Below are positions 12,140-41,643 of a stretch of DNA of 64,000 nt, piece by piece (position 1 is the first letter of the stretch; every line of letters begins with the position of its first letter). Under the pieces are notes generated by a model. That model saw nothing but the letters and a program-made list of their open reading frames with translations, was not told the DNA's origin and made no database searches. Origin of the DNA: Macrostomum lignano. Taxonomy: Eukaryota. The DNA is taken from the NCBI GenBank assembly GCA_002269645.1, contig NIVC01001525.1, forward strand, positions 209,925 to 273,924, written 5' to 3'. The translations under genes were made by a program, and so were the position numbers.

Positions 12140-12940
12140 TTAAAGTAAAATTCTTTTCTCCTTATTAATCATGACAAACTGATAGGGTTGGTTCCACTTT
12201 TCATAGCATATGTTAACAAATTCCTCCTGTGATATTGTTCTGTTAGAGTTCTTAGCTGGATATGTAATGTGAGCTGGGGCAATGACCTCATTATAAAATC
12301 GTTTCAGTCGATCTTGTGGTATGGTTGGGAAAAGGAGAATCAAATTACAGTTACCTCTAATTGTTTTATTCGGCAGTTCAAACCAGTTTTGGGCAATGTA
12401 AATAACATTGCAATTATTATGTCTACCCCGGGTGAAATAATTTTCTATCTGTTTCTGGGGACCGGTCATGCAGTCATCAAAGACAATCAGGTGCTTTCTC
12501 CCCTTTTCTAGTTCATCAGGTTGAGGTAAGAGTTTAGTTTTAGGATCTATCTGTGGATCTCCATAAGTGAAAACTTTAATGTTTTGCCATTTTTCATTGT
12601 CTGGGATGTGCTTTGCGTATTCAGTGGCTACAACTTCCGGGTTGCTGTTGAGGTCTTTTTGATGTCTAAAACATTGAATAATATCTTCCTTGTTGAGTTT
12701 GTTCTGTAGGCCCGCTACTAGCATTTTATACTCATCTTGATACAGAGTGGGTGAATAGATATGTAGTGTGTCATAATCGAGGAATCCAGGTCTGAGGAGC
12801 ATGTTAAAAACTCTGAAGGTTTTCCCTGACCCAGATGAGCCAACAACAATGCATCGGAAGTGCCCTGGAATTATCTCGTTGTGAGCAAATTTTATCTGAT
12901 TGCGTGTCCAGTGGGGACGAAAGTCGTTTGTGAAGTCCAT
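12140..12940 (-). CDS. A32-like genome-packaging ATPase
   Basis: Walker A GSSGSGKT, Walker B LIVFDD and the FTRGRH...IAQ motif. Confidence 0.95.
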   Translation of the reverse strand: MDFTNDFRPHWTRNQIKFAHNEIIPGHFRCIVVGSSGSGKTFRVFNMLLRPGFLDYDTLHIYSPTLYQDEYKMLVAGLQNKLNKEDIIQCFRHQKDLNSNPEVVATEYAKHIPDNEKWQNIKVFTYGDPQIDPKTKLLPQPDELEKGRKHLIVFDDCMTGPQKQIENYFTRGRHNNCNVIYIAQNWFELPNKTIRGNCNLILLFPTIPQDRLKRFYNEVIAPAHITYPAKNSNRTISQEEFVNICYEKWNQPYQFVMINKEKRILL

Positions 12941-12992
12941 TTTTTTATGTAAAAAAACTTTTTCTTTTTAAACTTGTGTATTTAAGACGCGT

Positions 12993-14078
12993 GTGTCTTT
13001 TTTCGGGTTGTGTGTGTCTTTTTTTCGGGATGCGGCTCGTGCTAACGTTGACAAGCATGATGCGGATGTGGCTCTGATCAGTAACTTTTGGGCGTACATG
13101 TTCAAGGAGTTTAGTGTATCGAATGGGAGCACTGAGTTGGAGCGAATCGCCAACTTTGGAATTGTCTATGACGCTCATTGTTTGATCGAGAATCCTGATT
13201 TTATTCAGTTGGGAAGTGGTGCGGGTTTTATTGCAGATGAAAAAGAAGGAGACATCAATGACAGTGGCTATAAAAATAGGAAGAAGAGATACAACTATGC
13301 ATTGCAAGGTGCTGATGATGCTGCTAAGAACCCGCAGTATCGGTCTGTTGATGTATTTGTACCACTGAGATTCATGAGTGGATTCTGTAATACATTTAAT
13401 CGACTGACTAGTAACTTTAGCTACACATTTAGACTGACTAGAGATGATCGCAGTAGAGTGTTGTGGACTGGGGCGGACCACACTGGGATGGCTGTGAAGC
13501 TAACCGGAATCGAGCTGTATTTGGAAGTCATTGAGCCAAAGACCGCACTAAAAGCAGACTATCTTAAGGCAATAGAGAAGGACATTGATGTTGCATACAC
13601 GGCCTACATGTGTCGAGATGAGCGAAACGAAACTAGAACAAACATCTGCATCAAAGAGGGATCATGCAGCAATCCAAGGTATATCATTATTAACATGAGA
13701 AACCCAAATAGCATTATACGCTACATGCATGGAGACGTGCGGTCCATTCAGCATGAAATCAGTGATAATCTTTACCCTGCACTGCCACAAAATGGAGATT
13801 TCAGTCAGAACAAGATTAGCAAATTTTACAACGAGTTGGTCGACTTGGCTGTGAAAGAGAACAATGGAATTGCTATCACTGCTCTTCAATATGGAACTCT
13901 ATATCCAATGTTTGGAGCTGATGTGTCTGCCAGACAAATGCCTACTGATAACAGCCCTGTGAATATCGTGACTAACATTGAGAGGACTACCGCAACACCC
14001 GTGGACTTGTACATTATCTATGCATTTGAGAGGAAGGTGAAGCTTAACATGATCAACAATTCATCCAGTAAAGTTTAA
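12993..14078 (+). CDS. Major capsid protein (double jelly-roll); N-terminus probably lost
   Basis: NFWAYMF..F, FVPLRFMSGFC and LYPMFGADVS-type motifs; divergent from the ATPase and upstream of the penton; no A-run ATG start. Confidence 0.8.
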   Translation: MSFFGLCVSFFRDAARANVDKHDADVALISNFWAYMFKEFSVSNGSTELERIANFGIVYDAHCLIENPDFIQLGSGAGFIADEKEGDINDSGYKNRKKRYNYALQGADDAAKNPQYRSVDVFVPLRFMSGFCNTFNRLTSNFSYTFRLTRDDRSRVLWTGADHTGMAVKLTGIELYLEVIEPKTALKADYLKAIEKDIDVAYTAYMCRDERNETRTNICIKEGSCSNPRYIIINMRNPNSIIRYMHGDVRSIQHEISDNLYPALPQNGDFSQNKISKFYNELVDLAVKENNGIAITALQYGTLYPMFGADVSARQMPTDNSPVNIVTNIERTTATPVDLYIIYAFERKVKLNMINNSSSKV

Positions 14079-14101
14079 ATATTTTTTTGTGGGTGAAAAA
14101 A

Positions 14102-14953
14102 ATGGAAGCCATAGCCGAAAGACTAAACAACATTGTTTCACACTCCAAGGAGAGCATTCCTATTACAATAACTGGGCGAATTAATGACTCAAACGGGATG
14201 TTTGTTGAAATCCAGGATTTGGATCCAGGCGCTAATTACCATGTCTATCTTAACGACTTCACTGGTTGGTCAAACGTTCCCAATGTGATGGCAGCAAATA
14301 ATAAGTTTTATTACAAATGGAAAGGTGCAGCAGCAGACCCTGTGGTATTCCATGTGAGCACGCAAAGTGTGGATACCTACAATAACTTTCTAGAAAATGT
14401 CTTTACTAAGAGAGGCCATTTTGAGACACCTGATGCGAGTAAGCCAGAGAAGAAACTGTTCCCTGTCAAACTAACCTATGATCTCACTGTAATGAGAGTG
14501 GTCATGCAAGTTCACAAAGATGCGGAGGTTGAGTTTAAAGATGACACTTGGTATAGGGAACTGGGATTCGAGAAGAAAGTTTATAAGGCAGAATCCGCGG
14601 CGCGGACCGCCACTCAAGCATCGGGGACCGTTAAAATGGTCCGGGAAAGTGTAAGCGGTTTGTTCTTAGCACCCAATATTGCAGACATTGTAAAGGGTTT
14701 GAATATTCTAATCAGAAGCAATCTCAGTCTTGATTGGGTATTTAAGGGAAAGCGAACGAATATTTTGTACAACATCTCCAACTCTGTTGCTGGAGGACAG
14801 ATGGTGGTAGAGAAACCAAATCCAGTGAAAAGAGTTGTATTGAGTAATAAGGAGATTCACGAGATTGTGCTACAGTTTGAGACTGAAGATGGGGTGGGTG
14901 TTGATTTCAACGGTGAAGAGTTTGTGTTGACGTTGATCATTGAGAGAATGTGA
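14102..14953 (+). CDS. Minor capsid (penton) protein
   Basis: C-terminal ILYNI...GGQMVVEKPNP...EIVLQFETEDGVGVDFNGEEFVLTLII pattern typical of Polinton pentons. Confidence 0.85.
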   Translation: MEAIAERLNNIVSHSKESIPITITGRINDSNGMFVEIQDLDPGANYHVYLNDFTGWSNVPNVMAANNKFYYKWKGAAADPVVFHVSTQSVDTYNNFLENVFTKRGHFETPDASKPEKKLFPVKLTYDLTVMRVVMQVHKDAEVEFKDDTWYRELGFEKKVYKAESAARTATQASGTVKMVRESVSGLFLAPNIADIVKGLNILIRSNLSLDWVFKGKRTNILYNISNSVAGGQMVVEKPNPVKRVVLSNKEIHEIVLQFETEDGVGVDFNGEEFVLTLIIERM

Positions 14954-15574
14954 GAAAATGTGTTCCCTTTTAAGTACGCTTGCCGAGAATAGAGTGGTAT
15001 GAAAAAATGCGCGCATGTGTACTCAAAATCTCTTACCCCATTCTGACAGTTTGTGGGCGTGGGCGTCGCGTGTGTGGGGGAGAGGGGAGTGTATGTGTGT
15101 GGGCGCAGCGCGCGTTGGGGAGAGAGATTTTCACTTTAACTGAGCCCAGCCGAGGAAGAATTTCCTTGATTGATATTGGCCTTCGCTTCTCTTCTCTCCA
15201 CACAAGTGTACAGTCTTGAGCACACTGGTTTCGGCTACAATTTCTCTTTCCACCATGCCCTTCTCCTTCATACTCCTCACCTCGCGCTATGCTCTGTGTA
15301 CAGAGAAGTCTCACGCCTCATGCTCTATCGTACACTGAGCTATATCGATTGTTTTTCCCTGCTTGACTCCAAGATTGTACAGTCTAGAATTTTCTGGAAT
15401 TTTCTAGCTGTATAGCTGTATTTAAGCAAATGCAGAAACACTCGGGTTGATTCTCCCCGCATATGCCATCAACTGCGACTGAGAAACGACGACTGCAGGA
15501 ACTTAAGCACGCTGAAAGTGATCTAAGAAATAGTCCGCCAAACTAGAAGATTAGAAGACAAGAAGATTTAGAAA

Positions 15575-16252
15575 ATGGAAGTCGAGTGGAAGCTTCATTT
15601 GACAGATAAGCAAGGCCTTTGTGCCATGCTACAAAGAGTTTTACAGGATATTCCGTCACATCTACAAGCAAGAAGAAGAGAGGAACTAACCACCTTTTTC
15701 GGTCTAGAAACTGGCGACCTACCAATCGAGTTTTTCGCCATGGCCCCTGATGATATCGCCGCAGCGAATGAAGCGCAAAATGTGAGTAGCGAAGAGAAGA
15801 AGGCGGCGGCTCTGCAGAAGAAGATGGCGGATCTGCAGATATTCAGGGAGAAGTTGTACGCATCCCGCGTAACACTAGCTGATCAGCTGATGGACGCTGT
15901 TGATCACCAGCTTCCATCTGGCGAGCAGAACATCATCACTAGGGTGAAGGCGGCTCTAGCAAAATACAAGAAGACTCAAATTGGAGGTCTACATTGGATT
16001 CTCGAAGTTGGGCGGCTGCTAAAAACTTATCGCAACGAGAACTTTGGACAAGATGTTAAAGTGCGGTTCGCCCATTTGTGTAAAAATGTAAACATCCAGG
16101 AATCAACTGGCTATTTGTACATTCGTCTGTACAAACTGTCTGTTACCCACCCAGGCTTGAGACAGGTGTCAATGCCAATTAGGGAACTAAACTCTAAGAT
16201 GAAGTTTCTAGAAGAAATTTTGGCCAGTGATCCTGCGTGGAAAGTTGTGTAA
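15575..16252 (+). CDS. Polinton accessory ORF, 225 aa, helical
   Basis: Intact ORF with coding-like composition; no motif confidently recognised. Confidence 0.6.
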   Translation: MEVEWKLHLTDKQGLCAMLQRVLQDIPSHLQARRREELTTFFGLETGDLPIEFFAMAPDDIAAANEAQNVSSEEKKAAALQKKMADLQIFREKLYASRVTLADQLMDAVDHQLPSGEQNIITRVKAALAKYKKTQIGGLHWILEVGRLLKTYRNENFGQDVKVRFAHLCKNVNIQESTGYLYIRLYKLSVTHPGLRQVSMPIRELNSKMKFLEEILASDPAWKVV

Positions 16253-16269
16253 TTTTTAAATTCAGTTCA

Positions 16270-16865
16270 TTTAGAATTTTTCTAACGCGTTAGAATTTCA
16301 AAGAGAAGATTCAACAACTGGAGACAGCCGATTGGTTAAGTAGAGGAGGGTAGCAATTTTCTCAGTACTGTGTGCAACTCAGTCGGTGGGTTTTAAATTC
16401 TAAAGCTGTTAGAAATTTCTATGTGAAAAGTTTCCCGCAAGATAAGCTTGGGCACACCAAATTTTCACATAGAAAATTCTAACGCGTTAGAGAATCTAGC
16501 TGCTGGCTCAAAGGAACGCTAGGCTGGCTCTGTATGGTTAAATAGAGGGGGGGTAGAAATTTTCTAACGCCGTTAGAATTTTCTATGTGAAAAGCTTCCC
16601 GCATGATAAGCTTGGCACACCAAATTTTCACATAGAAAATTCTAACGCGTTAGAGAATCTAGCTGCTGGCTCAAAGGAACGCTAGGCTGGCTCTGTATGG
16701 TTAAATAGAGGGGGGTAGAAATTTTCTAACGCCGTTAGAATTTTCTATGTGAAAAGCTTCCCGCATGATAAGCTTGGCACACCAAATTTTCACATAGAAA
16801 ATTCTAACGGCGTTAGAGAATCTAGCTGCTGGCTCAAAGGAACGCTAGGCTGGCTCTGTATGTTG
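16270..16865. repeat. 162-163-bp tandem repeat with internal palindromes
   Basis: Unit marker ATTTTCACATAGAAAATTCTAACG recurs at 16461, 16624 and 16786; degenerate copies upstream. Confidence 0.9.
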
Positions 16866-17032
16866 TTGAAGAATTCTAACTCAGATCCTACATAGTGTCT
16901 GTTTTTTCTACCATTTTTGATAATCTTGTAATAGTTGATACATATCCTATCAGCTGTGCAACCGTTAATAAATATATAATTCTTACTAATGAATGATAAA
17001 ATTATTTACATTTTTTCAATGGGTAAGGACCT

Positions 17033-17375
17033 TGCGCTGATGATTTAAAGTCTTAGGGATCTGGTAGCACGTTGTGGATTGAATGTGGGGAGAAGAATGC
17101 AGATTTTTTTCTGATTGTTTCGAAGATGCTATGGGTGGATTTGGAGCTGTTATGCTCAGAGCATAAACCCTCAGAGCATAACAGTAGGACACCTGTTATG
17201 CTCTGATTCTGTCAGGGATAATATGGATGGATTTAATGGGATTATGGAGGACGTTTTGTGAGCGAGTGCGACCCCCCTTTTTTTCTGATTCTGTCAGGGA
17301 TAATATGGATGGATTTAATGGGATTATGGAGGACGTGAAAAATTTTGTCCCAGAAGCCCCCTCATGCCTTCTACT
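17033..17375 (-). repeat. Right terminal inverted repeat (343 bp, includes a 53-bp internal duplication plus a 29-bp spacer)
   Basis: Direct repeats at 17202-17254 and 17284-17336; the left TIR has only one copy. Confidence 0.93.
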
Positions 17376-17396
17376 AAAACAAAAACGAAATAAAAT

Positions 17397-20300
17397 ATGA
17401 GCCTACTGCAATCTTTAGATATTCGGCAAAGCGTGCTCGCCCTGTGCGATATTCTCGGATCTTCTCAGTCAAAGCGTAACAAAATAGCCAGACCTGTCGA
17501 GGCGTGCCCAATTCTGAGACTCACACCGCCAACGACTTCCGACAGCCAAGACGCCAACTGTGAGATCTTGATTGCCAGTCTGGAAGCTGAGGATTCTGAA
17601 GACACGACCGGATCGAATCAAACTCCATATGCCGTGGTGTCTTCATTGCACTCGGTAAAAGTCACCTTCACGGGCTTACCGAATTTAAGCGAGCGATTCA
17701 GTGCAACTTTTCCCCCAGTGCTCAGTGATCTGTGCAGACTTGTATCGCAACTGATTAAAGTGACTGGAGTCCAGCAGCTCAGGATTCAAGTCGATCCAAG
17801 CACTGCTGACCGAATACTCAAATCATCAGTCCAACCGCAGCTGCTTGATGACGTTTCAATCAGGCATTTCCTGTCATCCGCTTTTGTGTTCTGCCATCTA
17901 CTGAGGGTCCTGGGAGAAACCCGTCTCGAGTCACTTTTGAACCTGAATGCTGGCGATGCGCTGGTGACGATCGGAGATCAGCCCCAATGCTCGATGAGAG
18001 TCGCTGTGAGTTCCTGCTTAAACGGAGAAGATGGAGCAGTCAATGAAGAGTTGGAGCATTGCATCGCTGAGAGCTCAAAGCGTTCTACGCCAGTTTATCT
18101 GTGCATTCTGTTCAACGAGATCAGGACCTGCAAATGGTACCTGAGGACCAGAAAAGAAGTTGAATGTCAACGTAAGCGGTTGCCCAACCATGACGTGACT
18201 CGAATTCGAGTGGAATCGGATTCTGGCCTGAAAATCCGAGTTATTCTATTCGATGTTCAACAAGGAGAATGCTATCAGGACACAGGAGCTCTGCCAGCGG
18301 AACAGGTACTAAGCGAGTTCAGCGATGACCAGTTTCTGTGTGCTGCGGTTTCCAAGTGTGAGCAGCTGGCTCAGGAGCACTCGTTTCAGCTGGAGTGCTT
18401 CACGGTGCCCTGCCGAAACACCGCTCACATGCTGCAGGCAGCAGCAAAAGTGTAAGACAGTTTTAAAAGTGCGCAATGTCAGTTTATGTTAGTGGTGACA
18501 AAATGAACTTATATGGAATTTGCGTCACATTTCAGAGCTCAGGAAGCCCAAAAGCAGAGTGCTGAGGCAGCATCGCCAGCACATGTAAGTGGTCACAGAA
18601 CAGCACAATGCTGTTGCATGTAATTGTCATGAGGGGCTTTCAGGACGCAATTTTCAACTTTCCAGAAGTGGGAGGTCGATTTGAGAAAGTCCTCCAGCTA
18701 GGTACCCTTAAATGTTACGGTACGGTGTAATCTACCAATAATCTACTTGTACAAGAAATACACAATAAAATATCTTTCTGAACGCTTGCAAGAAAACAGT
18801 AGCAGAATCAATTTTTTACGAGTAACTCAAGCAAATTTATTTAAATTCCTAATTTACTGTCATAATCATTACAATTACTGTATGCTTTGAAACTACATCT
18901 ACTCGAACGTACGGTAGGTACCCTTCTGACGTCTCCCTCTAATCGAGCTGAGTCGGCGTCAGGACACACGGACTCTCTTTCCCCTCTATGCAACCGAAAG
19001 AAAGAAGGCAGAGTGCGCACTTACTCAGCTGGCGGCTGTCGCTTAGGGATGGTGCAGTAGGTGGCCTTTTTGGTATATTTCCTTTTCAGGTAGTACGACC
19101 GTAACTTCGGCTGTACTAGGTATAGCGCTGACGGAATGCAGGGTTCTAAGAGAGGGGGTAGCCGGGCCACGCACCGCTCCAACCCGCCGCGAGCGATGCT
19201 AAATAGCACACGCCCACGGAGGGGGGAGGGCCACGCGCTCTCCACCCCACTACCCACTACCCCACCAACCCCGCAGTCACCCCCCCCCGGGGACGGCAGC
19301 ACCAAGCCCGCCGCCGGCTCAGCCAATCACTACACGACTGGGCTGGCCGCGACCAATCGCACGCGAGGCGAGCGAACAAATACCAAAAGACCAAACCGAC
19401 TTCAGCCTCTAACTGCGGCATACGCAAGGGGGGGGATAACAAAAAATAGTTGAGGGGTGACTCAGCCCGCTGGGAGGCTAGGTGCACTGGCACTGTGAAA
19501 GTGCACAGCGCAACATCTACGAGTAGTAAGCTTCGAGCGCCTGATAAATGTATTCGGTGCGATAATTTCCCGAACTCTTGCATGACTGGGTGCATGCCTT
19601 CTTACAAAGATACCTAAATTTTAAATAAGGCTCATGCTGTTTACAATAGAAGCCTGGATAGACGACAGGAAATATTTTTGTTCCTATTTTTTGTAATGTT
19701 GTTCTCAAAGTGATTCATTGATACGCGCGTAGATTAAGTAAGTAAGCATACAAAATTACGAGCTATGAAGTTAGAAGATATTCAAAGTAAGTCGGCCCAT
19801 CATTCTTTATTTTAATAGGAACATTACAGATTCTGTCCTGTCCTGAAACTCCCTCATGAAAACTAATATTAATAAAAATTTTGCCATACAGCCAGTTAAG
19901 ATAATAACATTAATTTGATAAAAATATGGTACACAATAATCTTTGCAGACTCCCGGAGCTCCACATTAATATTAAGGTTAATTTCCACACGAGGCCAGAA
20001 CTCTTGCATATAGCTCGAATTTTAAATGAGGCTCGTGCTGAAAACTGCTAGCCATAATAATTTTACCATAGCCAGTTAAAGTACAAAAATTTGATATAAA
20101 TATGCTTCACAATAAACTTTACAGACTCCCGGAGCTCTGCATCATCTCGCAGCCACCGGAGATGCATCACTGCTCGCTCAAATCCTTGAAGCCGATCCGT
20201 CAGTACTGCAAGACCCACACAAATCGTTTCCTCATCGCACGGCCCTTCTCTGTGCCGCAGCAGCCTCAGTCGCGGACTTCTCTCAAGGCTCCGAGGCTCA

Positions 20301-21193
20301 TGCCGAGTGTTTCGAAATCCTCATCAGCAGAGGAGCTGATCCGCAAGCTGCGGACAGCCGGAAGCACTCTGTCTGGCACTGCGCCATACTCTCACACAAC
20401 ATTCCTCTGCTAAACACTTTGCTGGCGAACCACAGGGCAGACATCAACAGCGCAGATGGAAGCTGCAAGACGCCGTTGCTGCTGGCAGTAGAAGAGGAGA
20501 ATGCTCCGGTAGCAGAGATGTTGTTGGACAACGGGGCCAACTCTCAGCTCACTGACAAGGCCGGTCAGTCTGCCCTGACCATGGCTGTTTCTGCTGGAAA
20601 CCTGGAGCTGGTGAAGACTGTTCTGAAGCATGAGCCGGAGATTCTGCGTGACAGCGGTGCTGAGAAATACGCCAGCATCTACTGGTCTGCGTGGAAGCAG
20701 GGCTACGAAGACATCTGCTTGCATCTTCTGCAGTGAGTAGAAATACCTGAAATAATCAGGCATAATAGTAAGACAAAACTCAATATTATTTGCGACGCGT
20801 TTCGGCTAAAACTAGCCATCTTCAGGCACTATCGAACAGAATTTATTTCAACTTATTAAATACTGTGTAGACGACAAAATCAGGTATTGAAAAGATATAA
20901 AAGGACTAAAGGATCAATGTACAGTATAGCAATTTTCATAATATTTGTTTGTGGAAACACGAAACTCTCCGATTCAGGAACATTTGCTGCAATGCCATGG
21001 TTGTTGTGATGAGCCAGACATAACCTCTCATTTCAAGGTCATAGACAACAGCAAAAATGAGCATAAACTTAACATTCTTGAAGCTCTGCACATTAAGTTA
21101 CACAAACCCATTCTCAATGTCCAACTATCTGGAGGAGGTGCGAGTGAACGGCTGTTGGTGTTCTAAGCTAGAGTACATTTGGGGCGCATACGC

Positions 21194-21252
<59 letters not shown>

Positions 21253-24200
21253 CTCTGTCCTGTCATTCCACAAACAAATATTATGAACATTGCTATACTG
21301 TACATTGATCCTTTAGTCCTTTTATATCTTTTCAATACCTGATTTTGTCGTCTACACAGTATTTAATAAGTTGAAATAAATTCTGTTCGATAGTGCCTGA
21401 AGATGGCTAGTTTTAGCCGAAACGCGTCGCAAATAATATTGAGTTTTGTCTTACTATTATCTGTTAAGAGTGCTTCTCTACCGCAATCAGGCATAAGGTC
21501 TGCGAGCCAAAATACATGTAAACCTACGAGTACAAGGGGCACAGCAGCTCAGCAATAACCGCGTCTGACTCTCATGCCACGGCCCTGGTTTGATTCGCGA
21601 GGCCACATTCATGTGGGCCTCGTGCACGAATAGTTGGTCTGGGAGTTGCCGTGCGATTCACAGCCATAAGGGCCGACCCCCAGGGCACAGAGAGTTTACA
21701 TGTCTTACGATTGGGAAGTCAAGGCCGCTGTACACCTGTGTGAGCGTGTGTATGAGTGCGTGCCTGCGTACAGTATTGGCATGCTCTCAGGAGTCAGCGG
21801 AATGGGCAGAATTGCCGTCAGCGCTGGTTGCTGAGATGGTGCCTGGCATTGTACTCGTAATTATACTTTTTCCCAGACGCAATAACAAAATATTTTGGCC
21901 ATTATTCCACAGTTTTATGTGTACCATGGACATTTGGAGTGAAAAAATCCATCGCACAATATTTTTGTTAATGAATACAGAACAGCAAGGAGTAAATGAA
22001 CAAGAAGGAAAAAAATCATTAAAACTAAAGTACCAGCTACACGAAGGGGGGCCGCAGCCCAGCGGTCCAGCCAGCGACCCAGGCTCGATTCCAAGTGCAG
22101 TCACATTAATTTAGGGCTGAATTGGAATCTCGGCTTGGCTCTGCTCGTGCAATTAACGGCCTTGAGAGCCAACCCCCAAGGCGCAGTGAAGTGTACATGC
22201 CTAACGATAAAATAAAGTTAGGGCCCCTGTACACTCCTGTGTGAGGGTGTGCCTGCTTACGTATCCGCGCGCTTGTGTGCCTACTCAGGGGAGTCGGCGG
22301 AATGGGCAGTAATGCCTCTCGCCGGTTGTGTGCCTATGTCGCTTAAAGTGCGCCAGGGTGCACACAACCCCCCTGCCTCTAATAAAAAACCAGCTACACG
22401 AAAAGAGTTCATAATAAATGTCACAGCTAGTGCAGTTTATCAGCTTGTAGTCGAAATTTGACAATGTAAAAATCAATTTGTCACCCAAGGCCAAAGTGAA
22501 ACATGCAGTTCTCAAAGCCGCAGTTCCCAAAGATGCTCGACACTTTAGTTTGATGATTTGGCACTGCAAAAGGAGTTGGTCTATTTTGAATGTTTAATAT
22601 AAACGAGAAATACAGGTGCTCAAGTATAGTTGCCGAAATTACCATTTAAAAGATGCACGTCTTGGCTTGCGACTGACGAACTTCGTCTGATGAGCTTCTT
22701 TCGCCACGGTATCCAAGCTGGGATTCTTTGGGACTGTCGCTGCTCGACTGAATTAATTGGCCGCTTTGAGGCATCGCTTATAGCCGTCGAGGCGTTGAAG
22801 ACTGCATGGTCGCGTTTTCTTCTTAGGTAGCGCCGCACGGTTCGCTCAGTGGTCGACAGGAAGTTTTTTCCAATTAATAAGCGCTGCTGTTTGACGAGAT
22901 GCACCAGCCATAGTTGCTTGACAAGACAAATAGCTTTTTCTCGCACTACCCGCTTTCCTGATTTCTTGCAAGAGGCAAGCTAAATCAGCACTCATCACAA
23001 TGTTTGATTGTATAGAATGCAACTGAGTTGAATAATGGCCAATCAATTAAATTGCATACTATACAAGTGCATTGTATTTATACTTTCACTCAGCGCGCAG
23101 TCATTATTCCACACTTGTGAGGCCATCATTCCACACTTTTTGTCGCAGTCATTATTCATTATTCCACACTTTTTTATCATGCTTCAATTGGCTGTTTTAA
23201 GAGTTATTTCACCCATAGACAACTGAGTTTTGTGTCTTAGTTTGCCCATAGACAACATTGCGCTAGGGTACGAAAGCCCTATTCAAAATACTTTTAAAAA
23301 TGCTTAACAACATCTATTTAGCGTCAATACAATAAAATGACGACTGGGTGAAATAACTGGTAACTAGATCAGGTATTTTGGCCACTTTAATTAGATACCC
23401 ATTTAAAATATTTAATAGTTTGATACAATCAAATATACTTCGTATTCTTGCCATTTAGCACCCTTCAAAACAGAATTATGGTTTAAACAAAACATTTCAG
23501 AGAGAAATTTGAATTGAACGAGCACTCCATTACGGTAAGAAAACATTTCTGTTGCCGAGAAAGCGAATAAAAACCACAGATGGTCATCTAAAAATTTGCC
23601 ATAAAATTTTTTAGGAAGCCAAGAAGCTGAACTGCCTCATCAGCCAAGCTAGGCAGAAGGAATTTACAAAAGCCGTCAGCAAAGAGAACTGCAACTGGAG
23701 AGACTGGGAGGGAAGAACTCCTCTCCAGGTGGCTTCCAGTGGAGGCTTGCGACCGTCTAGAAAATGTCACCTCAAGTGCGCAGAGCTGCTGCTCCAGCTG
23801 GGTGCGGATCTCAACGCTGCGGATCTGGAGGGAAATACGCCTCTGCACTTGGCTGCTGCTGCTGGCAACACGGAAGTCGTTGAGCTTTTCCTCAGATACG
23901 GTGCATCCCGCGATAAGAGGAACTTTTCGGATGCCACTCCGCTGAATGCGGCAGAGAGCAAAGGACACTCGGAAGTGGTCGCAGTGCTGGCAAGGGCGGA
24001 GACACCAAGCGTGAGGTGAGATGAAATTTTTGTTAATATAGTTTAGAATATGTTCTGATGGACAACTATCGGCTGTTAGGTTTTAAGATAAAAATCAGGT
24101 TGTTAAACACTTGAAAATCAATTCTAAGCTAGCTGTCTCTGATCAATAAGGAACTGCAGGGCCTGTTCTGTCCAACTTCTCTCCAAATTACAGTATTTTC

Positions 24201-27200
24201 CAAGCTTTAGAATTGTATACACTATCCATCACTGCACATCGCACTTATTTGTGAAAGTTGCGGATCGAACCCAAGTTTCTGGAAGTTGAGCGTAGGGTTT
24301 TGCTCCAAACTCCCTAAATCTTAAAAGAGGGAAAATGCTGGCTAGCAATGAAGACTGCAACAATTTTTTCCGGCATTCGCACTTGACTGACTGCTTCGCT
24401 TCATTTCCATGTGCTTCCTCCAGTTTTCCACTTTCTGTCAAAATGCCTGCATTTCACAAGCGAACTTTGGAAATGGCTAATGATGTGTACCAACTTGCAT
24501 GTACCAACTTCACTTCCTCACCTCGCTTTCATTCACGCATTCCAGAAAACAACAGCACACCCACACAACCGCTCAAAACCGCTCAATGTGAGTCTCATTC
24601 TCCTTGGCCCACTCTGCAAATATGCACTGTGATCTGTCACTCTGGACCGGGACCGCCCTTTTTCTCCCTCCTTCTTTCTCCCTTTTTCTTTCTCCCTCCC
24701 TCCACTCATTCTCCCTTCCGTCTCGCTGTCCTCTTTTTCCCTCCGCTCTTTCTCCTTTTCGCCTTAGTGCCTTTCTCCTTTTTTTCTCACTTTTAATTTT
24801 TTTTCATCCATACCGCTCTTCAGAAAAATGGGCGAAAATCAAAACCGACATCAGCAAGAGACCATTGAAAACATTACTGCTGCTGCACGCAATGGCCGCT
24901 TTCAAGACGTCAAGAATTTCCTCTCACAAATCAATGACCAATCAAACAGGGACACCTGCTGCATCAAAGCTGCCGAAGGAGCTGCATTCAATGGTCACTT
25001 TGAAGTCGTCAAGTTTCTCCTCCCACAAATCAATGACCAATCAAACAGGGACACCTGCTGCATCAAAGCTGCCGAAAATGCTGCAAACAATGGTCACTTT
25101 GAAATCGTCAAGTTTCTCCTCTCACAAATCAATGACCAATCAAACAGGGACACCTGCTGCATCAAAGCTGCCGAAGATGCTGCAATTCGTGGTCACTTTG
25201 AAATCGTCAAGTTTCTCGTCCCACAAATCAATGACCAATCAAACAGGGACACCTGCTGCATCAAAGCTGCTGAAGGAGCTGCATTCAATGGTCACTTTGA
25301 AATCGTCAAGTTTCTCGTCCCACAAATCAATGACCAATCAAACAGGGACACCTGCTGCATCAAAGCTGCTGAAGGAGCTGCATTCAATGGTCACTTTGAA
25401 ATCGTCGAGTTTCTCGTCGCGTGTCTCTCAAGTGACGATCTAAAAGCGAAGCTCCGTTTCCAATGCGCACTTACCGCTTGCTCTCGTCTTCACGAAAATG
25501 TCGTTGCCTCCCTCGGCCTCGAGCCCCAATGGCTCTTCCAATCGAACACCATCCTCAGCTTCACTGCAGCGATGGCCATCGAAAGCAGGAACTCTGTTCT
25601 CAACGACACCCTCTCTCGAATGCAGCCAGCTCAAATCACACAGCTGCTCCGTCTCTCCATCTCTCAAAGAAACGTCACTCTTGCCGCCACACTGCTCAAT
25701 CATGAGCGATTCAGCACACAGCACGTCGATCTCCCAGACGACAACACCGGAGCCACCGCTCTCATGCTCGCAGCTGATGCTGGTCAGCACGAACTCATTC
25801 ACAAACTCATCGATCTCGGCGCCTCACTGCACGCTCAAGACACTCACGGTCGCACTGCACTGTCACGAGCCTGCCAAGCCGGTCACGTGCGAGCAGCCAA
25901 GACTCTCATCGACAATGGAGCCGATGCCAGCCATCGAGACAGTCAAGGCCTCACGTGTGCGCAGCTCGCACAGCGATTTGAGCAGCGGCAGGTGCTGCGG
26001 CTGCTAAATCCCACCGAGTCAGTTGCCATTTGTCCCATTACTTGCAATTACTTCGCTACCTTACCTCGCTTTCCTTCACACATTCCAGAAAAACACAGCA
26101 CTGCCAGCCAGCCGCTCACCGCCTCCATCCGTGAGTCTGACTGTCTTTCTCCCTTGGGCCACTGGAATTTTTAAATCCGCCTCCACTGACTCCACTCTCA
26201 CCTCTCCACCCAGACTCTCACACCACTCAGAGCAGCACCTCAGCGAGGAGCTGCATCGACTGCTCAGCGATGCGGGATTCACCGAGCAGAGAGCAAAGTA
26301 TCTGAAAAACCTGGCTGACTGGCTACAAGAAGTCGCTGGAGTCCTCACACAGGATCGCAGGCAAATGACCGGCAGCTACGCAGAGGGCTGGGCCAACAGT
26401 CTGGTGCAAGTCAACGGCAGGACAGCTGCAGACTCCGACATTGACTGGACTGTGCTGGTTGATGGGCAAAAGTTCCATCTGGAAGGTGGCTGTGACAGAA
26501 CAGGTTTCTGCAGCAACGACACTCCGCTCCAGGTCAAGGAGGGCCACGCACAGGTGGCAGTCGGAGCAGGTCAGTGACGCTCCGCTCATCATCAGAATGC
26601 CGCAATCCCCAATCCAAGCCCCCGTAAACTTTGCTCAATTTTTTAGTAATTAACTGAACTTCAGAGCTCACAAGTTCAACCTGAGTTTGAGACCTGACTG
26701 AAATACCTTTCAGCACTCATTTTGCTTTGAATAAAAATTCTGGCAACCAATCAGTCAACTCAAGTCCCTGCAATTCAACTGCCTCACCACCTCAGAGGTT
26801 ATGAAACAATTATTAAGCAATGCCTTGCCTTCTCTTTCCCCTTAAAATATTTTTTCTCTTTCTCCGCCCATCATCAACTCCATAGCGGTGCGCCTGCATG
26901 CATTTCAACGAATACTTTGCTTCATTCACTGATTGCAGTAGTAGCACTCACACACGAACTCAACCAACTCATTCAAGCAGCTGAAAACCAACCCATCCTG
27001 TTCATTCGCCACAATGCCACTCTCTGCTCACTGCGCTTCACAGGCAGCCAACCTGCTGTGACAGCCACGGCGTGCGGTGTGCGGCCTGCACAGGACACGT
27101 GCCATGCGATCCCGTGCTGCAGCAGTTTCGGCGAGGACAGAATAAAAAAACTGCTTCAAAACAATTTAGATAAAGTCCACCTCGTTCGGGCGACCAGACC

Positions 27201-28656
27201 GAGCTCGACCAACGAGCTCAGAGTGAGCTTCAGCTTCCAAGAGAAAGACATCATGAGACAGTTGAGCACAGTCCAGGGCCAGCTGTTCACACTCATCAAG
27301 TTCATCTTCAAGAGACACTTGCCGCTCACTCTGGACACACCTGGACTCAAGACCTACCATGCAAAGACTCTGCTATTCTTCATGCTGGAGAGGCATGGCA
27401 CAGATCCTGAAACTGAGGCTTGGCAGCAGCAAAATCTGATCGCTCTGCTCAACGAGTCTCTCGACATGATGCTGAGCTTCATCGACTTGAGTAGCTCGCC
27501 CGATGAGTGCATGTCGCACTTCTTTATGCCCGATGCTCCGCTCTACTTCAAGAACGCTGGAATCGGCGGCGACTTCGACAACACGAAGGCGAGGGTTCGA
27601 GACCGACTTTGTGAGCTGAGAAGCGACATCGGCGGAGTGGTCGAGCAGCTGAGGAGACTCGTGAGACCTCTGCAGTCAGAGAAGTTCTACTTTCACCTGT
27701 TCACTCTGCTGCCTCTGACAGCGCCGCCTGCTGTCACGGAGATCAGGGAAGGAACTTGGAATCCAGAAATGTACTACAAGTTCGCAGACGTGTACAGTGT
27801 GGTGCACCAGTGTTTGAGCGAGCTGCAGTCGGAATCGAGCGACAGAGACACCCTGATGAGGCAGCTCAGTCTCCTGCATGAGCTGCAGTGGTGCAAGTGC
27901 GCCGCCCTGTGCATGACCGCCATGGCACATTTGAAGTTCGGAGAATCTGAGGAGGCTGAGAGACTCGCGATGGAGCTGTACAGACATCAGGTTGAGTCAG
28001 GGTTAAAGCCACAGGATATTCGATATGAATATATCCAAACTAAATCGCCAGCAGACTCAGACTGGGCGTGGAGGTTCTGCCTCCCCTGCGACTCTCCGCC
28101 TCGCTTCCCATTCCTTCCCGAGTTCACGCAGACTCTGTTCACAGCCAGACTGTCGCAGCCTCTCTCCTCCCACCTGTACGTGAACTTCCGCTGCCTGAGC
28201 TGGAGTCTCCAAGCTGAGCTGCTCCGCAATCGCACACCTGCAATCGCATTCGATCATTGGATTGAACAGCTGCTTGGAGACCCGGACTTGGAGGAGCTGC
28301 TCACTCTGGCTCACTACAGCGACTGCCGCGAGCACGTGGAGCTCAGCCTGCAGCAGATGGAGATGATCGAGAAAGAGAGACGCGTCGCCATGGAAACGCA
28401 GGACGAGGAGAAGATCGGCTGGGTCAGGCAGAAGCGGTGGCGAGTTTCGAACCGCAGCGGCAGCGACAGCGGCGCTCACCGCAGCAGGGAAGATGAGGAG
28501 CGGAGGCTGTGGGCGAGGGCGAGGCTGCGGCGAGACGGGGCCGACTCGGGTCGCCTGGTTGCCATGGAAACTGCAGCGGAGCAGAGAGACAGCTGGACTC
28601 ACGCCAAGCTCACGTCGCAAAGTCGAGATCGGAAAAGGAAGGCTGAGTCAGACTGA
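17397..28656 (+). CDS. Spliced gene of about 1788 aa: unknown N-terminal domain + ankyrin repeats + cGAS/Mab-21 nucleotidyltransferase. Exons 17397-18451, 18536-18584, 20125-20732, 21491-21497, 23615-24015, 24546-24587, 24824-26017, 26089-26130, 26214-26569, 27044-28656
   Basis: All introns are GT-AG with matching phases; the exons total 5367 nt (1789 codons). Ankyrin motifs TPLLLA and TPLHLAA; NTase GSYAEG...[28 protein letters not shown]. The 3' linkage (23615 onward) is stronger than the 5' linkage via the 7-nt exon. Confidence 0.72.
18620..19866. mobile_element. Degenerate TIR element (about 630 bp net) related to the Polinton terminus, carrying an ORF1 relic
   Basis: 26-bp imperfect IRs (21/26) at 18620-18645 and 19841-19866; ORF1-like peptide on the minus strand; second copy starts near 53609. 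Confidence 0.55.
18903..19512. mobile_element. Unclassified 610-bp insertion with 8-bp TSD ACATCTAC
   Basis: TSD at 18895-18902 and 19513-19520; the paralogous site near 53901 lacks it; no TIR and no poly(A). Confidence 0.8.
20791..20828 (-). ncRNA. Second copy of the minimal hammerhead ribozyme (inverted arm)
   Basis: Exact reverse complement of 21394-21431. Confidence 0.85.
21394..21431 (+). ncRNA. Minimal type I hammerhead ribozyme (Penelope-associated)
   Basis: CTGAAGA (21397-21403), stem II GGCTA/TAGCC, GAAA, palindromic ACGCGT, GTC cleavage triplet, short stem I TGC/GCA. Confidence 0.85.
21536..21848 (+). mobile_element. tRNA-derived SINE, family 2
   Basis: tRNA-like head (AGCTCAG A-box, GGTTTGATTC B-box-like); central segment shared with the 22046 SINE; no clear TSD. 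Confidence 0.55.
22046..22388 (+). mobile_element. tRNA-derived SINE, family 1, with 14-bp TSD
   Basis: GGGGCCGCAGCCCAGCGGT head, GGCTCGATTCC B-box, AATAAAAAA tail, TSD ACCAGCTACACGAA (22032-22045 and 22389-22402). Confidence 0.88.
22620..22946 (-). pseudogene. Possible degenerate Tc1/mariner-like HTH fragment
   Basis: Only the S..ERTVRRYL pattern; no TIR or TSD found. Confidence 0.2.
24880..25410 (+). repeat. Five near-identical 99-bp (33-aa) ankyrin repeats
   Basis: CAAATCAATGACCAATC at 24927, 25026, 25125, 25224 and 25323. Confidence 0.95.
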
Positions 28657-29365
28657 CTGCCTAGAGCGGTGTTCGATGCTGAGAATTTTCATGTACTTAG
28701 TGTTTTTTCAAGCAAACTGTCGGACTCTGACTGACTATGCTCATTTATTGACTGTGGGCTCTTTATTTGTCTGGTGAGGGTTTGCGTACTCTGGGTACAT
28801 CGTTGCTCATTCTCTATTCCCTCGTGCATGACCTATCTCTGTCACCCACCCCAATGCTATGCTATTGACTTTCACAAACTGTTTATTCTGATGCATGCTG
28901 ACTTGATGAGGGATCTGCGTGTTTTGCTTGAAAACACCTGGAATCGCCTCTACATTTTGACTGCGCATGGGTGGCCAGAAACTTGGCAAATTTCTGCCTG
29001 CTCTCTAGGAACTGCAGTTTTGTACATTTTTGCTGCAATTCAATTCGCACTGGATGCTGAATTGCTTTTTCCGTTCAAACTGCGTCTCTGCTTTAATGCG
29101 GGCTTTTCTCTGCGATTTTGCGGACTTCAATACTCAATTGCCAAATGCTGTTTAATGACATATTCAAGCCAAATGCACAGGTAGCAGTTATCTGCATGAA
29201 ACAGTAATCTATGTTCGAGGAATTTTACTGCATATACATGTAATACTGAAAAAATACTTTGGATGTACTTTTATAGCTTAAATGTTGTGTATACATGCTC
29301 CCGAATAATCCAAGCACCTGCTCTCAGAATGAGCTCGACTAGTCTGCAAATTGATTTCATGTAGT

Positions 29366-30422
29366 TATGAACATTCAGTGACTGACAGCCTGACAGCTGC
29401 CTCATGAACATTCAGTGACTGACAGCCTGACAGCCTGACAGCTGCCTCATGAACATTCAGTGACTGACAGCCTGACAGCCTGACAGCTGCCTCATGAACA
29501 TTCAGTGACTGACAGCCTGACAGCCTGACAGCTGCCTCATGAACATTCAGTGACTGACAGCCTGACAGCCTGACAGCTGCCTCATGAACATTCAGTGACT
29601 GACAGCCTGACAGCCTGACAGCTGCCTCATGAACATTCAGTGACTGACAGCCTGACAGCCTGACAGCTGCCTCATGAACATTCAGTGACTGACAGCCTGA
29701 CAGCTGCCTCAAGAACATTCATTGACTGACAGCCTGACAGCTGCCTCATGAGCATTCAGTGACTGACAGCCTGACAGCTCCCTCATGAACATTCAGTGAC
29801 TGACAGCCTGACAGCTGCCTCATGAACATTCAGTAACTGGAAGCCTGACAGCTGCCTCATGAACATTCAGTGACTGACAGCCTGACAGCTACCTCATGAA
29901 CATTCAGTGACTGACAGCCTGACAGCCTGACAGCTGCCTCATGAACATTCAGTGACTGCCAGCCTGACAGCTGCCTCATGAACATTCAGTGACTGCCAGC
30001 CTGACAGCTCCCTCATGAACATTCAGTGACTGACAGCCTGACAGCTCTCTCATGAACATTCAGTAACTGACAGCCTGACAGCTGCCTCATGAACATTCAG
30101 TGACTGACAGCCTGACAGCTGCCTCATGAGCATTCAGTGACTGACAGCCTGACAGCTCTCTCATGAACATTCAGTAACTGACAGCCTGACAGCTGCCTCA
30201 TGAACATTCAGTGACTGACAGCCTGACAGCTGCCTCATGAACATTCAGTGACTGACAGCCTGACAGCTCCCTCATGAACATTCAGTGACTGACAGCCTGA
30301 CAGCTCCCTCATGAACATTCAGTGACTGACAGCCTGACAGCTCTCTCATGAACATTCAGTGACTGACAGCCTGACAGCTGCCTCATGAGCATTCAGTGAC
30401 TGACAGCCTGACAACTCCCTCA
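29366..30422. repeat. Minisatellite, 35/42-bp unit (ATGAACATTCAGTGACTGACAGCCTGACAGCTGCCTC)
   Basis: More than 25 tandem copies, varying by one 7-bp GACAGCC subunit. Confidence 0.97.
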
Positions 30423-30865
30423 TGTGAGTCAACAACAATTCCATTATTTTATTTATTGCTGTTTTTCGTATTGGCCAAAATCGATAAATGATATAATTCC
30501 CCAGTCTGTAATTCAGTATTTAAGGTTTCAATGGTAAAATACACTTGTAGTACACTTATTTAACCATGCTTGCTTGCTTTTTCCAGTCTGCAAGTAAATT
30601 TAAAAATGAATTCTCCAACTCACCATTTGTGTTCTCTGCCCCACAATGCTGCTGGTTTGAAGAGTAAATGTTCTTTGTTTCAGTTATGAGTACGTCTGTA
30701 CTTTTACTTATACTCATGCTTCGCCTATTGCACCCGCCCCCGTCCGCGCCTCACGCCACCTTTTCTCACCGCCTTCATATTGATTTGTTATAACGTACAT
30801 TGCAAGTCATGCACACTTACAACCCCCCCGCTAAAGCTTGTGTCAACCCCGCCATATATTACATT

Positions 30866-31917: not shown

Positions 31918-32039
31918 AGTTCCAAGTTGTATTGGCGCCACTGACTCATCTGCAATTGGCGCCAACTGATCCCACAACCTATCTGATCCCACACCTTATC
32001 TGATCCCACCCTATCTGATCCCACCCTATCTGATCACCC

Positions 32040-37691: not shown

Positions 37692-37694
37692 CAC

Positions 37695-39369: not shown

Positions 39370-40580
39370 CTATTGAAAAAATTCAGACCTGTCAATCAGA
39401 GCATCCATGATATCGGCGGGAGCACCAGCCTGGCCTTCATGCCGCATGAAGTCAACGAGATTTCTACTCCGTCTAGCGGCATTATTTCGGAAAAAATTCT
39501 GTTCGAAGCTGGACAGTCCGTACCGAAGTTCGAAGAACATATTGGCTGCCACCAAAGTGACAACTGCCAGCTCCATCTCCGACTCATCAAAGCCTTCATC
39601 ATCTGAATTGCTAATTGGAAATGAATCCCTTGGCATCCATTTTTCGAAAACTTCTTCCGGCGTTGCTTTGCGCTCGCACTCACAAGAATCTCCCAAGAAC
39701 ACTCGGTAGTCAGTAGTAGCCATTGACTGCCTGACTGTGATTTGCTGGAGCGGATTCTCAGTGCAGTGCCGACAGTCGCAGTTGTGCAGCAGCACGTTTT
39801 CACCCTCCAGATATCTCACAAAATTCGCAGTCCAGAATTGTCGTCGTGTCGAGTCCCAGACATCGTCCCTTCTTGGGTTTCCGTTGTGTTGGCCGGTTGC
39901 AAACTTGACACTTTTTACAGACACGTTCGTCATCTGGGGCCCGTCATGTACAGCAAAATGGAACTTTTCGAGATCCCAGCAACTGTACTTGAAGTCTTCA
40001 CCGATGCACCCCTTCTCAAAGCACAGGCCGTTTAGGGCCACGTAATTTCTAATGAAGGAAGCAAAATTATTTTGGCTGTTGGTGCTGCTGCTGAAAAACA
40101 TCTCAAGAAAGCAAGGAATTTCAATTGCTGCAGTGGCGTGAGCTGGGTGATAGCGGTATGAGAAATACTCATGGATATCTGAGACGGTCAGGTAAAGGAT
40201 GGCCGACTTAAATAGCTCGTAGCTCACCGGTATGTCCACTGACACACCTTCGTTCATCCAGGTGCACAGACATCGCTCACCCATTCCTGCCGGTATTTGA
40301 CCCTGGTTTCTTCTAATTATTAGCCTCCCGAACACTCTGCGCCCTTCACCTTGTTGTTCTGACGTCACAGCCCTAAAAAGTCTTGCCAGCTTCTCGTGAA
40401 GCTGATAAAATGGTTCTCCTGCATTCGTCTCGTAGGTGAGGACGACCCTCAAAGCCAGACTGCGTTTTAGGTTTGGGTCGTTTCTAAACTGGACGTTTTG
40501 CATCAGGGCTTCAATCTCCGAGACAGCTTTTTAGTCAGTATTTCCTCAAATACTCGTAGTTCATAGTTGTCACGGTCCAT
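39370..40580 (-). CDS. Copy B of the uncharacterised neighbour gene (377-aa ORF from 40503; ATG 40580 is offset by a 1-nt frameshift near 40530)
   Basis: Long intronless ORF with Cys/His clusters (HNCDCRHC, SCECE); alignment with copy A shows the missing base in a homopolymer run. Confidence 0.65.
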
Positions 40581-41643
40581 CTGCAAAATTTAGGTTCCAT
40601 CTTTATTACAATATTTTTAACATTACGAAATGAAAGCTAACATAACGTGATACAAAAAAGAATTCAAAATCTAATAATTTATTTTCAAATTTACCAGTAA
40701 CAAGACTACTAGTAAAAATTCAAGTGATGTTTGAAATTAAAATATCCTGCAATATTTTTTAAAACTTTTTTTGCATTCCACCAACCCAGCATTGTGCAAT
40801 AATGGTTGCAATCGCGTCATTTTTAATATAGATAAATATTCAATAACTGCTTCAGTTAATATATTGTGAGAAGTTTCGCCCACCATGAAGTATAAAAAAG
40901 TGGCTTGGTGATGAACTATGGAGTAAGACACAGTATGAAAAAATAGATTCACAAGGTCCTCCAGCAGCTCAATATAATGCTTGTAGAGTTTTATGTATTT
41001 TATTTACAAGTCTGCTTAAACACCGGAGACAGAAGAAATGAAACAACACTGGCACAAACGGCAGTCTTTTTCTTATCGAGACTGTGAGCTCACTGGATCA
41101 GTCAAATCTGCAATGCATTGTGTGCCGAAACAATAGGAAGGGATGAGGGGCTGAGAGAGATGAGGAGCTGGGAGGGATGGGGGCTGGGAGGGATGGCGGG
41201 CTGGGAGAGAAAAGTGGGACTGGGAATGTCTAACACACAGGCAGTCAGCAGCTGTACTACGTTTGTAGCTGCCCTCTCCCGCTGTGTCATGGCGGTACGG
41301 GCAGTACACGGTGCGTCCTCACACTGAGCAGCTACAGCAAGGTTGGGCTGCATGGGTCTCCTCTCCAGATGCAGGTATTTGGCAGGAGAGGGGGTTTTCA
41401 GCTTATTATCGATCCTCTCTCTCTGCTCCCCATTGCCATGGCTCACCCATTTTGCAGGGAAAATCATATAATGCAGCCCATTGTTACTAAAATGGCTATT
41501 GAGGCATCTCTGTGAGAAACGCTGCTCAAATATTAAAGAAGTACTGCGTATACCAGACAGGACTAAATTAGAATAACTAGTGGTCCTTGATTTTCAACAA
41601 GTCCTTCTTTACAGCCAACAAGAAAACAAAAGCGAAATAAAAT

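Follow-up and report, generated by a model that had tools for sequence, protein, structure and literature searches.

A Polinton/Maverick element inserted 21 bp upstream of the start codon of an ankyrin–cGAS-like gene in Macrostomum lignano

Introduction

Polintons, or Mavericks, and the adintovirus-like elements of animals are characterized by terminal inverted repeats, a 6-bp target-site duplication, a protein-primed family-B polymerase, an rve integrase, and an A32-type ATPase (PMC4028283, PMC8502044). An adenain-like protease, a double-jelly-roll capsid protein, and phospholipase A2 (PLA2)-like and protein-X-like open reading frames (ORFs) also belong to the repertoire of this group, and the pairing of the last two has been described for one class of adintoviruses (PMC8502044). 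Transposons can also provide promoters and 5′ ends of innate-immunity genes, and their regulatory activity has been documented (PMC7786948). Here, we describe a 14-kb Polinton/Maverick of the flatworm Macrostomum lignano that ends immediately upstream of the start codon of BOX15_Mlig015600g2, a gene whose product resembles the animal cGAS-like receptors (cGLRs). The window, i.e., the whole stretch of DNA analyzed, comprises the final 64 kb of contig NIVC01001525.1 (209,925–273,924) in assembly GCA_002269645.1 (Mlig_3_7), and all close protein matches of the window are from M. lignano. Our overall verdict is that the transposon insertion at this locus is of an ordinary kind and that its recurrence at paralogous loci is modestly intriguing.

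Mlig_3_7 is a PacBio-based assembly of a repeat-rich, partly polyploid genome (PMC5730564). Duplicated non-repetitive blocks with ≥95% identity add up to 180 Mb of the genome, and the GenBank gene models are genome-guided RNA-seq assemblies that were cut at trans-splice and poly(A) signals (PMC5730564). Approximately 30–39% of M. lignano genes are trans-spliced; the acceptor motif is [T/C]TNCAG, and one nearby unpaired acceptor suffices for the reaction (PMC8629364, PMC5730564). A literature search found no mention of Polintons in Macrostomum, of cGLRs together with Polintons, or of this gene identifier, and the only two papers that it returned for Maverick with Macrostomum concerned unrelated topics.

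Results

The element starts at 3333 (AGTAGAAGGC...) and ends at 17375 (...GCCTTCTACT); its features and those of its surroundings are listed in Table 1. Within the window, the terminal 39 nt have exactly two occurrences, 3333–3371 (+) and 17337–17375 (−), versus zero expected from shuffled sequences, and they are identical at all four ends of the two copies of this family, the second of which lies at the paralogous locus L001. The inverted repeat arms show four mismatches within the first 282 aligned nt, and the right arm has one extra 82-bp sub-repeat. The right copy of the target AAAACA (17376–17381) forms the first 6 bp of the gap between the element and the start codon. In a self-comparison of the window, 1–818, 2013–3333, and 17376–18567 (the filled copy, or copy A) were collinear with 39515–40317, 40313–41629, and 41623–42809 (copy B), respectively, at 90–97% identity. 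At the point of insertion, the two adjoining copy B blocks share roughly the 6 bp of the target, which makes copy B an empty site that has AAAACA once. A second empty site was found at locus L007, a 97% homeologue of copy B. Terminal inverted repeats thus accompany a 6-bp target duplication in both copies of the family (AAAACA in the window and CCCCTC at L001), with an empty site for each. The element is a Polinton/Maverick that integrated via its rve integrase, giving the 6-bp duplication, and the insertion postdates the duplication that gave rise to the empty paralogs. Well inside the terminal repeats, two 71-nt sequences at 3999–4069 and 15092–15162 form a further inverted pair (89% complementary).

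The window forms the final 64 kb of a PacBio-based contig, the genome is rich in repeats and partly polyploid (PMC5730564), and the junction might in principle be an assembly artefact. We regard this as extremely improbable: the inverted repeats are complete, the 6-bp duplication is exact, and the flanks line up with two empty paralogs. This combination is not what a chimeric join would produce, and misassembly is ruled out for practical purposes. The end of the Polinton at 17375, the ATG at 17397, and their distance of 21 bp, as given in the earlier note on this DNA, agree with the inverted repeats, the target duplication, and the annotated start. The empty paralog that it had pointed to holds as well, with the single AAAACA of copy B and the second empty site at L007. 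It had put the start of the divergent neighbor gene at 40580 and the spacer at about 1.06 kb; these values are corrected to 40503 and 1,140 bp. The shift of the shared upstream region by 14 kb is confirmed by the match of 2013–3326 with copy B.

The sequence of the gap limits how a transcript of the host gene could mature. Because it contains no AG, canonical trans-splicing inside the gap, which the earlier note had envisaged, is excluded, and any mature 5′ end longer than 21 nt includes inverted-repeat sequence of the element. The nearest AGs before the ATG are located at 17352–17353 and 17355–17356, 44 and 41 nt upstream, inside the right inverted repeat (TTTTGTCCCAGAAG). Both are within the last 24 nt of the repeat, and the candidate acceptor context is TTTTGTCCCAG/AAG. 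An upstream ATG at 17364, also in the right inverted repeat, opens a nine-codon ORF whose TAA (17391–17393) ends 3 nt before the main ATG. An in-frame TAA 6 nt before ATG 17397 means that the host frame cannot extend into the element.

The empty paralogs indicate what the insertion displaced. In copy B, an acceptor-like TTACAG lies 28 nt before the ATG; the equivalent in the filled copy, left of the element, reads TTACCG. L007 has TTGCAG 1 nt before the ATG and a looser TAACAG further upstream. Both TTACAG and TTGCAG fit the published motif [T/C]TNCAG (PMC8629364). As judged from this comparison, the insertion moved the old 1.1-kb upstream region, together with a trans-splice-acceptor-like motif, 14 kb away. 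The divergent neighbor ORF of copy B is also open in L007 (64% amino acid identity). Its counterpart in copy A is split by a 1.2-kb insertion (819–2012) with a 5-bp target duplication, CTAAT. This repeat has relatives at 46918–48100 (93%) and 33191–34368 (81%) and may be a solo long terminal repeat (LTR). Further downstream in the host gene, an acceptor CTTCAG that fits the trans-splice motif (PMC8629364) is found 5 nt before Met-24828 (window 24818–24830).

All 1783 residues of the annotated host protein, PAA66849.1 (P0159), map identically onto nine exons of the window, and the annotated start is ATG 17397. From the N to the C terminus, the protein consists of a 350-aa domain, ankyrin repeats, a block of ~33-aa repeats, ankyrin repeats, and the nucleotidyltransferase/Mab21 part. 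The splice junctions of the model are canonical where read. A structure in which ATG 17397 begins a separate gene upstream of the Mab21 gene had been suggested by the models P0001 and P0003 and by a homologue search that returned no two-part model. This structure was overturned when a cluster look-up gave PAA66849.1 and its exact map onto the window. The 350-aa N-terminal domain has six representatives in 1.84 billion proteins, five of them identified as M. lignano, and ankyrin repeats always follow it. The domain had zero Pfam matches, and its AlphaFold2 (AF2) model was poor (predicted local distance difference test [pLDDT] score of 44). Exact-protein look-ups of exon 1, P0001, P0002, and the neighbor ORF gave no match. 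A MITE-like (miniature inverted-repeat transposable element-like) pair of 195-nt inverted repeats, 99% complementary, occupies 20762–21460 in intron 3, and related copies are found at L002 (10644–11348).

The Mab21 part matches PF20266 (Mab-21_C) above the cut-off. Its AF2 model has a pLDDT of 76.8 and a predicted template modeling (TM) score of 0.79, and the best Foldseek matches in the PDB were cGAS, MAB21L1, and the cGLR MB21D2 (probability 1.0; target-normalized TM score 0.4–0.55). At the sequence level, similarity to solved members is very low, the best phmmer match being MAB21L1 at E 0.012. The catalytic motif GS...DSDID...D is present: G44/S45, D66/D68, and D127, which would be the third catalytic acid, are retained in 16–18 of the 18 family members. 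The host gene is, by modeled fold and motif, a member of the cGAS-like family. The term "candidate nucleic-acid sensor" in the earlier note is a fair label at the level of the fold of the C-terminal part. At least 25 M. lignano models share the catalytic part, and most of them start at the equivalent of Met-24828 (MGxNQ...).

No break interrupts the 5.35-kb coding frame of the host gene (1783 codons). With the break density of the ORFs of the element (at least 6 per ~10.5 kb), Poisson arithmetic gives approximately three expected interruptions in the host frame and a probability of ~0.05 for none, which weakly argues for continued constraint. Exon 1 of the empty copy B (41644–42702) contains one in-frame stop, and that of the L007 homeologue and that of the filled copy are open; it is the empty copy B, not the filled copy, that looks like a pseudogene.

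The element has decayed since insertion, with a broken polymerase gene, a truncated capsid gene, and open remaining ORFs. The polymerase gene is distributed over at least seven open pieces in three frames, corresponding to at least six interruptions, chiefly frameshifts. In its translations, YADFEC, DANNLYG, NNSVYGKT, and YTDTDS can still be read, and the Exo I motif is recognizable along with polymerase motifs A, B, and C. Breaks were assessed by DNA alignment of the window with the L001 sister copy, both taken as they stand, with no repaired or consensus sequence. Where the sister copy is open over 590 codons, the window copy has seven frameshifting indels and no stop in the aligned frame. 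Stop counts from tblastn were dropped as unreliable, being inflated by wrong-frame read-through, and L006, a relative with 47% identity, was rejected as a polymerase reference for being too distant. A phmmer search of the sister-copy polymerase segment against the PDB gave no meaningful match. The capsid gene lacks an ATG and ~80 N-terminal codons. This truncation is one ~2.1-kb deletion relative to the sister copy, in which neighboring ORFs were lost as well; the sister holds four further ORFs there. In the window copy, no break was found in the integrase, protease, ATPase, PLA2-like, protein-X-like, and putative minor-capsid genes or in three unassigned ORFs. The integrase has 1557 relatives at 99–100% coverage in a search of 5.8 billion proteins, the closest of which is only 68% identical, and no M. 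lignano copies were among them. Neither the integrase nor the terminal repeat matched anything in IMG/VR, and an Rfam scan of the window gave zero matches. An AATAAA at 16967–16972 follows the tandem array, downstream of the outward-facing ORF and before the right inverted repeat.

Polintons recur at paralogs of the host gene. In a sample of five other ankyrin-Mab21 loci (L001, L002, L003, L004, and L008) picked regardless of transposons, a Polinton was found inside an annotated gene span at two (L001 and L003). The second copy of the window family (L001 11875–28588; NIVC01001377.1) is 16.7 kb long and is contained in the BOX15_Mlig016402g1 intron that is flanked by the nucleotidyltransferase and Mab21 exons; the equivalent site of the window, near 26860, is empty. 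The two copies are 97.2% identical over 7 kb, with 199 substitutions and 35 indel events (25 of 1 bp). In the L001 copy, breaks affect the polymerase, integrase, ATPase, and minor-capsid-like genes as well as two other ORFs. At L003 (NIVC01001654.1), 1–13800 holds a Polinton that belongs to another family, is truncated by the contig end, and shows 29–42% identity at the protein level, with capsid, ATPase, protease, and polymerase genes at 1743–12703. The first coding exon of the model P0004 (BOX15_Mlig011252g1) is placed at L003 5879–5935, between the protease and polymerase genes of this Polinton. It has the donor GTAAGT and is spliced over 27.5 kb to the nucleotidyltransferase exon; its sequence had no other occurrence in the window or the fetched loci. 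P0004 is a precedent in this family for a chimeric model initiated in a Polinton, as a single unverified gene model. The same intron also contains a 17.4-kb stretch (L003 14868–32319) that has perfect 529-nt inverted repeats at its ends and hardly any long ORFs; it represents a large non-autonomous element or else a palindromic artefact of the assembly.

Other repeats are abundant in the window. Dense tandem arrays with periods of 15, 21, 22, 37, and 45 bp and GA-rich tracts occupy 29337–33126, 37581–38473, 44400–46000, and 57700–64000, and direct repeats of 1–2.8 kb fill 54–64 kb up to the contig end. A 320-nt inverted pair (22070–22389 and 37374–37692; 94–96% complementary), 15 kb apart, flanks the 3′ half of the host gene and tandem arrays.

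Table 1 Features of the Polinton insertion, the host gene, and copy B in the window
Feature	Position	Strand	Remarks
Polinton/Maverick	3333..17375		14,043 bp; AG...CT termini
Left target-site duplication AAAACA	3327..3332		Single copy at empty site 41623–41628
Left terminal inverted repeat	3333..3622	+	~290 nt; one copy of 82-bp sub-repeat
Right terminal inverted repeat	17004..17375	−	372 nt; two copies of 82-bp sub-repeat
Gap between element and ATG	17376..17396	+	21 bp, of which 6 are the duplicated target; no AG
Empty integration site, paralogous copy B	41623..41628		Single AAAACA, 15 nt before ATG at 41644
Displaced ancestral upstream region	2013..3326		Equals copy B 40313–41622; 90% identity
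Host gene BOX15_Mlig015600g2 (PAA66849.1)	17397..28656	+	1783 aa; nine coding exons
Host exons 1–5 (approximate)	17397–18452, 18527–18585, 20126–20734, 23501–23535, 23613–24016	+	
Host exons 6–9 (approximate)	24823–26019, 26089–26132, 26214–26571, 27044–28656	+	
PLA2-like ORF, parvovirus VP1 type	4074..4532	−	Open; PF08398, E 2e-13
rve-type integrase	4563..5600	+	345 aa; open, full length versus homologues; PF00665, E 2e-9, above cut-off
Small ORF, adenovirus protein-X-like segment	5720..6073	+	PF05829, E 3e-7
Family-B polymerase gene	6198..10018	+	Broken; PF03175 fragment, E 8.9e-6; 5′ bound approximate
Putative adenain-like cysteine protease ORF	10106..10507	+	133 aa; open; weak: PF00770 20.3 bits (cut-off 21.3), adenain 1avp E 0.008
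ORF with hydrophobic segment	10512..11108	−	198 aa; open; no family match
Coiled-coil ORF	11315..12124	−	269 aa; open; no significant family match
A32/FtsK-type packaging ATPase	12140..12940	−	266 aa; open; PF04665 29.3 bits, E 7.5e-7 (cut-off 22.8)
Putative double-jelly-roll major capsid gene	12993..14078	+	5′-truncated; PF21738 23.5 bits (sister 24.0), under 27-bit cut-off
ORF at minor capsid (penton) position	14087..14953	+	Open; no family match
Outward-facing ORF	15575..16252	+	225 aa; same strand as host gene; no family match; absent from sister copy
Tandem array with short palindromes	16380..16860		Between last ORF and right inverted repeat; ~180-bp units, ttctaacgcgttagaa type
Divergent neighbor ORF, copy B	39370..40503	−	377 aa; no family match; unannotated

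Discussion

Here, we propose a course of events for this locus based on the junction, the gap, and the paralogs. The most likely reading, to which we give a little less than an even chance, is that of a passive insertion that has been tolerated and is bypassed by 5′-end processing in the last nucleotides of the element; as the best explanation of the locus as a whole, it stands at about even. The Polinton inserted in the 5′ leader of BOX15_Mlig015600g2, 15–21 nt before the start codon, and this would be tolerated because the gene family is highly redundant and many mRNAs are matured by spliced-leader trans-splicing. Transcription would start somewhere upstream of the gap, whether within the element or from the old promoter. 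The leader would then be joined at one of the two AGs 41–44 nt before the ATG, and all sequence upstream of the joined AG would be discarded as an outron. The protein would be unchanged, and its expression need not track the activity of the element. The paralog model P0003 (BOX15_Mlig016402g1) splices across the 16.7-kb intronic Polinton of L001, which indicates that such an element in a transcribed span need not prevent a spliced gene model. Long-standing silencing is disfavored by the intact 1783-codon frame and the transcript-based model (PMC5730564). Nothing in the sequence indicates that the Polinton drives or silences the host gene, and chance insertion, the null model of the earlier note, remains the best reading.

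Several points weigh against this proposal. The TCCCAG of the filled copy is an imperfect match to the published acceptor motif, and the many + strand AATAAA sites inside the element would hinder read-through from the old promoter. The gene model implies that transcripts with its exon structure exist, but it could be based on reads from a ≥95% identical copy, as the suffix g2 implies a g1. The intact frame could reflect a very recent insertion instead of constraint, given that the repeat arms differ at only 4 of 282 nt, and the dN/dS ratio (nonsynonymous to synonymous substitution rates) of exon 1 versus paralogs is 0.41–0.61, indicating moderate constraint only. In addition, the break counts of the element, with which the host frame was compared, are possibly inflated by small indels in a PacBio-based assembly of repeats.

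The earlier note had offered a choice between a silenced receptor and one driven from the terminal inverted repeat. The geometry and the gene model behind this choice were right, but the choice was incomplete, as an upstream start with outron removal and a short isoform are further possibilities. Silencing would mean that the insertion severed the promoter, that this copy is silent and beginning to decay, and that its model was built from reads of near-identical paralogs. The displacement of the upstream region and its acceptor-like motif by 14 kb, with the motif now mutated, is consistent with this, as are the split neighbor ORF of the same copy and the exon 1 dN/dS values. The size of the family (at least 25 models) and the 180 Mb of duplicated blocks at ≥95% identity (PMC5730564) likewise favor it. 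However, the nine-exon frame has remained intact next to a polymerase gene with at least six interruptions, the splice junctions of the model are canonical where read, and the in-frame stop in exon 1 sits in the empty copy B rather than in the filled copy. We consider silencing rather unlikely.

Transcription of the host gene from a promoter in the Polinton, either one in the right inverted repeat or that of the outward-facing 15575–16252 ORF, is also unlikely in our estimate, and we place it at about one chance in a handful. Expression of the sensor would then follow transcription of the element. The geometry fits this reading, as only 21 bp separate the element from the ATG, no AG occurs in the gap, and the last element ORF is on the host strand. 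The host frame is unbroken, and among the paralogs P0004, with its annotated first coding exon inside the L003 Polinton, provides a precedent. The argument consists of this geometry and one gene model, however, and the P0004 exon is a single, unverified model. Moreover, an AATAAA intervenes between the outward-facing ORF and the inverted repeat (16967–16972), and the same inverted repeat is present in the intronic L001 copy without an annotated exon. The decay of the window copy also means that it cannot report active virus replication. Coupling of the sensor to an active endogenous virus, as conceived in the earlier note, is thus unlikely for this copy, whose polymerase gene has at least six interruptions and whose capsid gene is truncated. 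A short isoform made from the CTTCAG acceptor before Met-24828 would render the insertion irrelevant to the cGAS-like part. P0003, P0012, and other paralog models start at the equivalent Met (MGxNQ...), the acceptor matches the trans-splice motif (PMC8629364), and L002, L004, and L008 have no exon 1 homologue upstream. That it is the only product is nevertheless highly improbable: the annotated model unites nine exons in a single frame, the paralogs P0157/P0152 likewise connect the N-terminal domain with the repeat region, and a promoter upstream of 24823 would still be required.

Compared with these alternatives, the passive and tolerated insertion remains our preferred reading. Fast-expanding gene families are often located in transposon-rich regions, and this is the mundane explanation for the recurrence. 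A bolder reading is that Polintons recurrently supply 5′ ends to ankyrin–cGAS-like genes, with transcription of the element wired to a nucleotide-signaling sensor as a genomic tripwire. It derives from the ATG 21 bp from the inverted repeat in the window, the first exon in the second Polinton family at L003, and the intronic Polinton at L001; we regard it as improbable. If the association is positional only, the locus is one more insertion in a repeat-rich, redundant genome, and its value is mainly descriptive. The analysis provides a first anatomical description of two Polinton families from a free-living flatworm and documents a lineage-expanded ankyrin–cGAS-like family with an unusual 1783-aa architecture. 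If the recurrence exceeds background and the chimeric exon is real, co-option of endogenous DNA-virus-like elements as regulatory inputs of innate sensors would become testable in invertebrates. The kind of event is known, and the recurrence and the chimeric paralog model alone could raise interest.

The window element shares the inverted repeats, the 6-bp duplication, and the protein-primed polymerase, rve integrase, and A32-type ATPase genes with the Polinton/Maverick and adintovirus-like elements of animals (PMC4028283, PMC8502044), the PLA2-like and protein-X-like ORFs extend the likeness, and the putative adenain-like protease and double-jelly-roll capsid ORFs, which score just below the Pfam cut-offs, may do so as well. 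It differs from them as a 14.0-kb deletion derivative with a broken polymerase and a truncated capsid gene in a flatworm host. The PLA2-like and protein-X-like sequences, whose pairing is described for one class of adintoviruses, are two separate ORFs on opposite strands here. The host protein has the Mab21/cGAS fold, the Pfam domain Mab-21_C, the GS...DxD...D motif, and the lineage-specific expansion in common with animal cGLRs, but a 350-aa lineage-specific N-terminal domain and two ankyrin blocks precede its catalytic part. As to 5′-end processing, the acceptor-like motifs 1–40 nt before the ATG in the empty paralogs resemble the acceptors at which spliced-leader trans-splicing removes outrons in M. 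lignano (PMC8629364, PMC5730564), and the filled copy has a pyrimidine-rich CAG 44 nt before the ATG. This candidate acceptor would be derived from the element and is one position off the published motif. Finally, a mobile element at the 5′ end of an innate-immunity-type gene, together with a paralog whose first exon lies in a Polinton, resembles the transposon-derived promoters and 5′ ends of such genes (PMC7786948). Regulatory activity is documented in those cases, whereas the present case offers geometry and one gene model; the known cases are mostly LTRs or short elements, and the present one is a 14-kb virus-like element.

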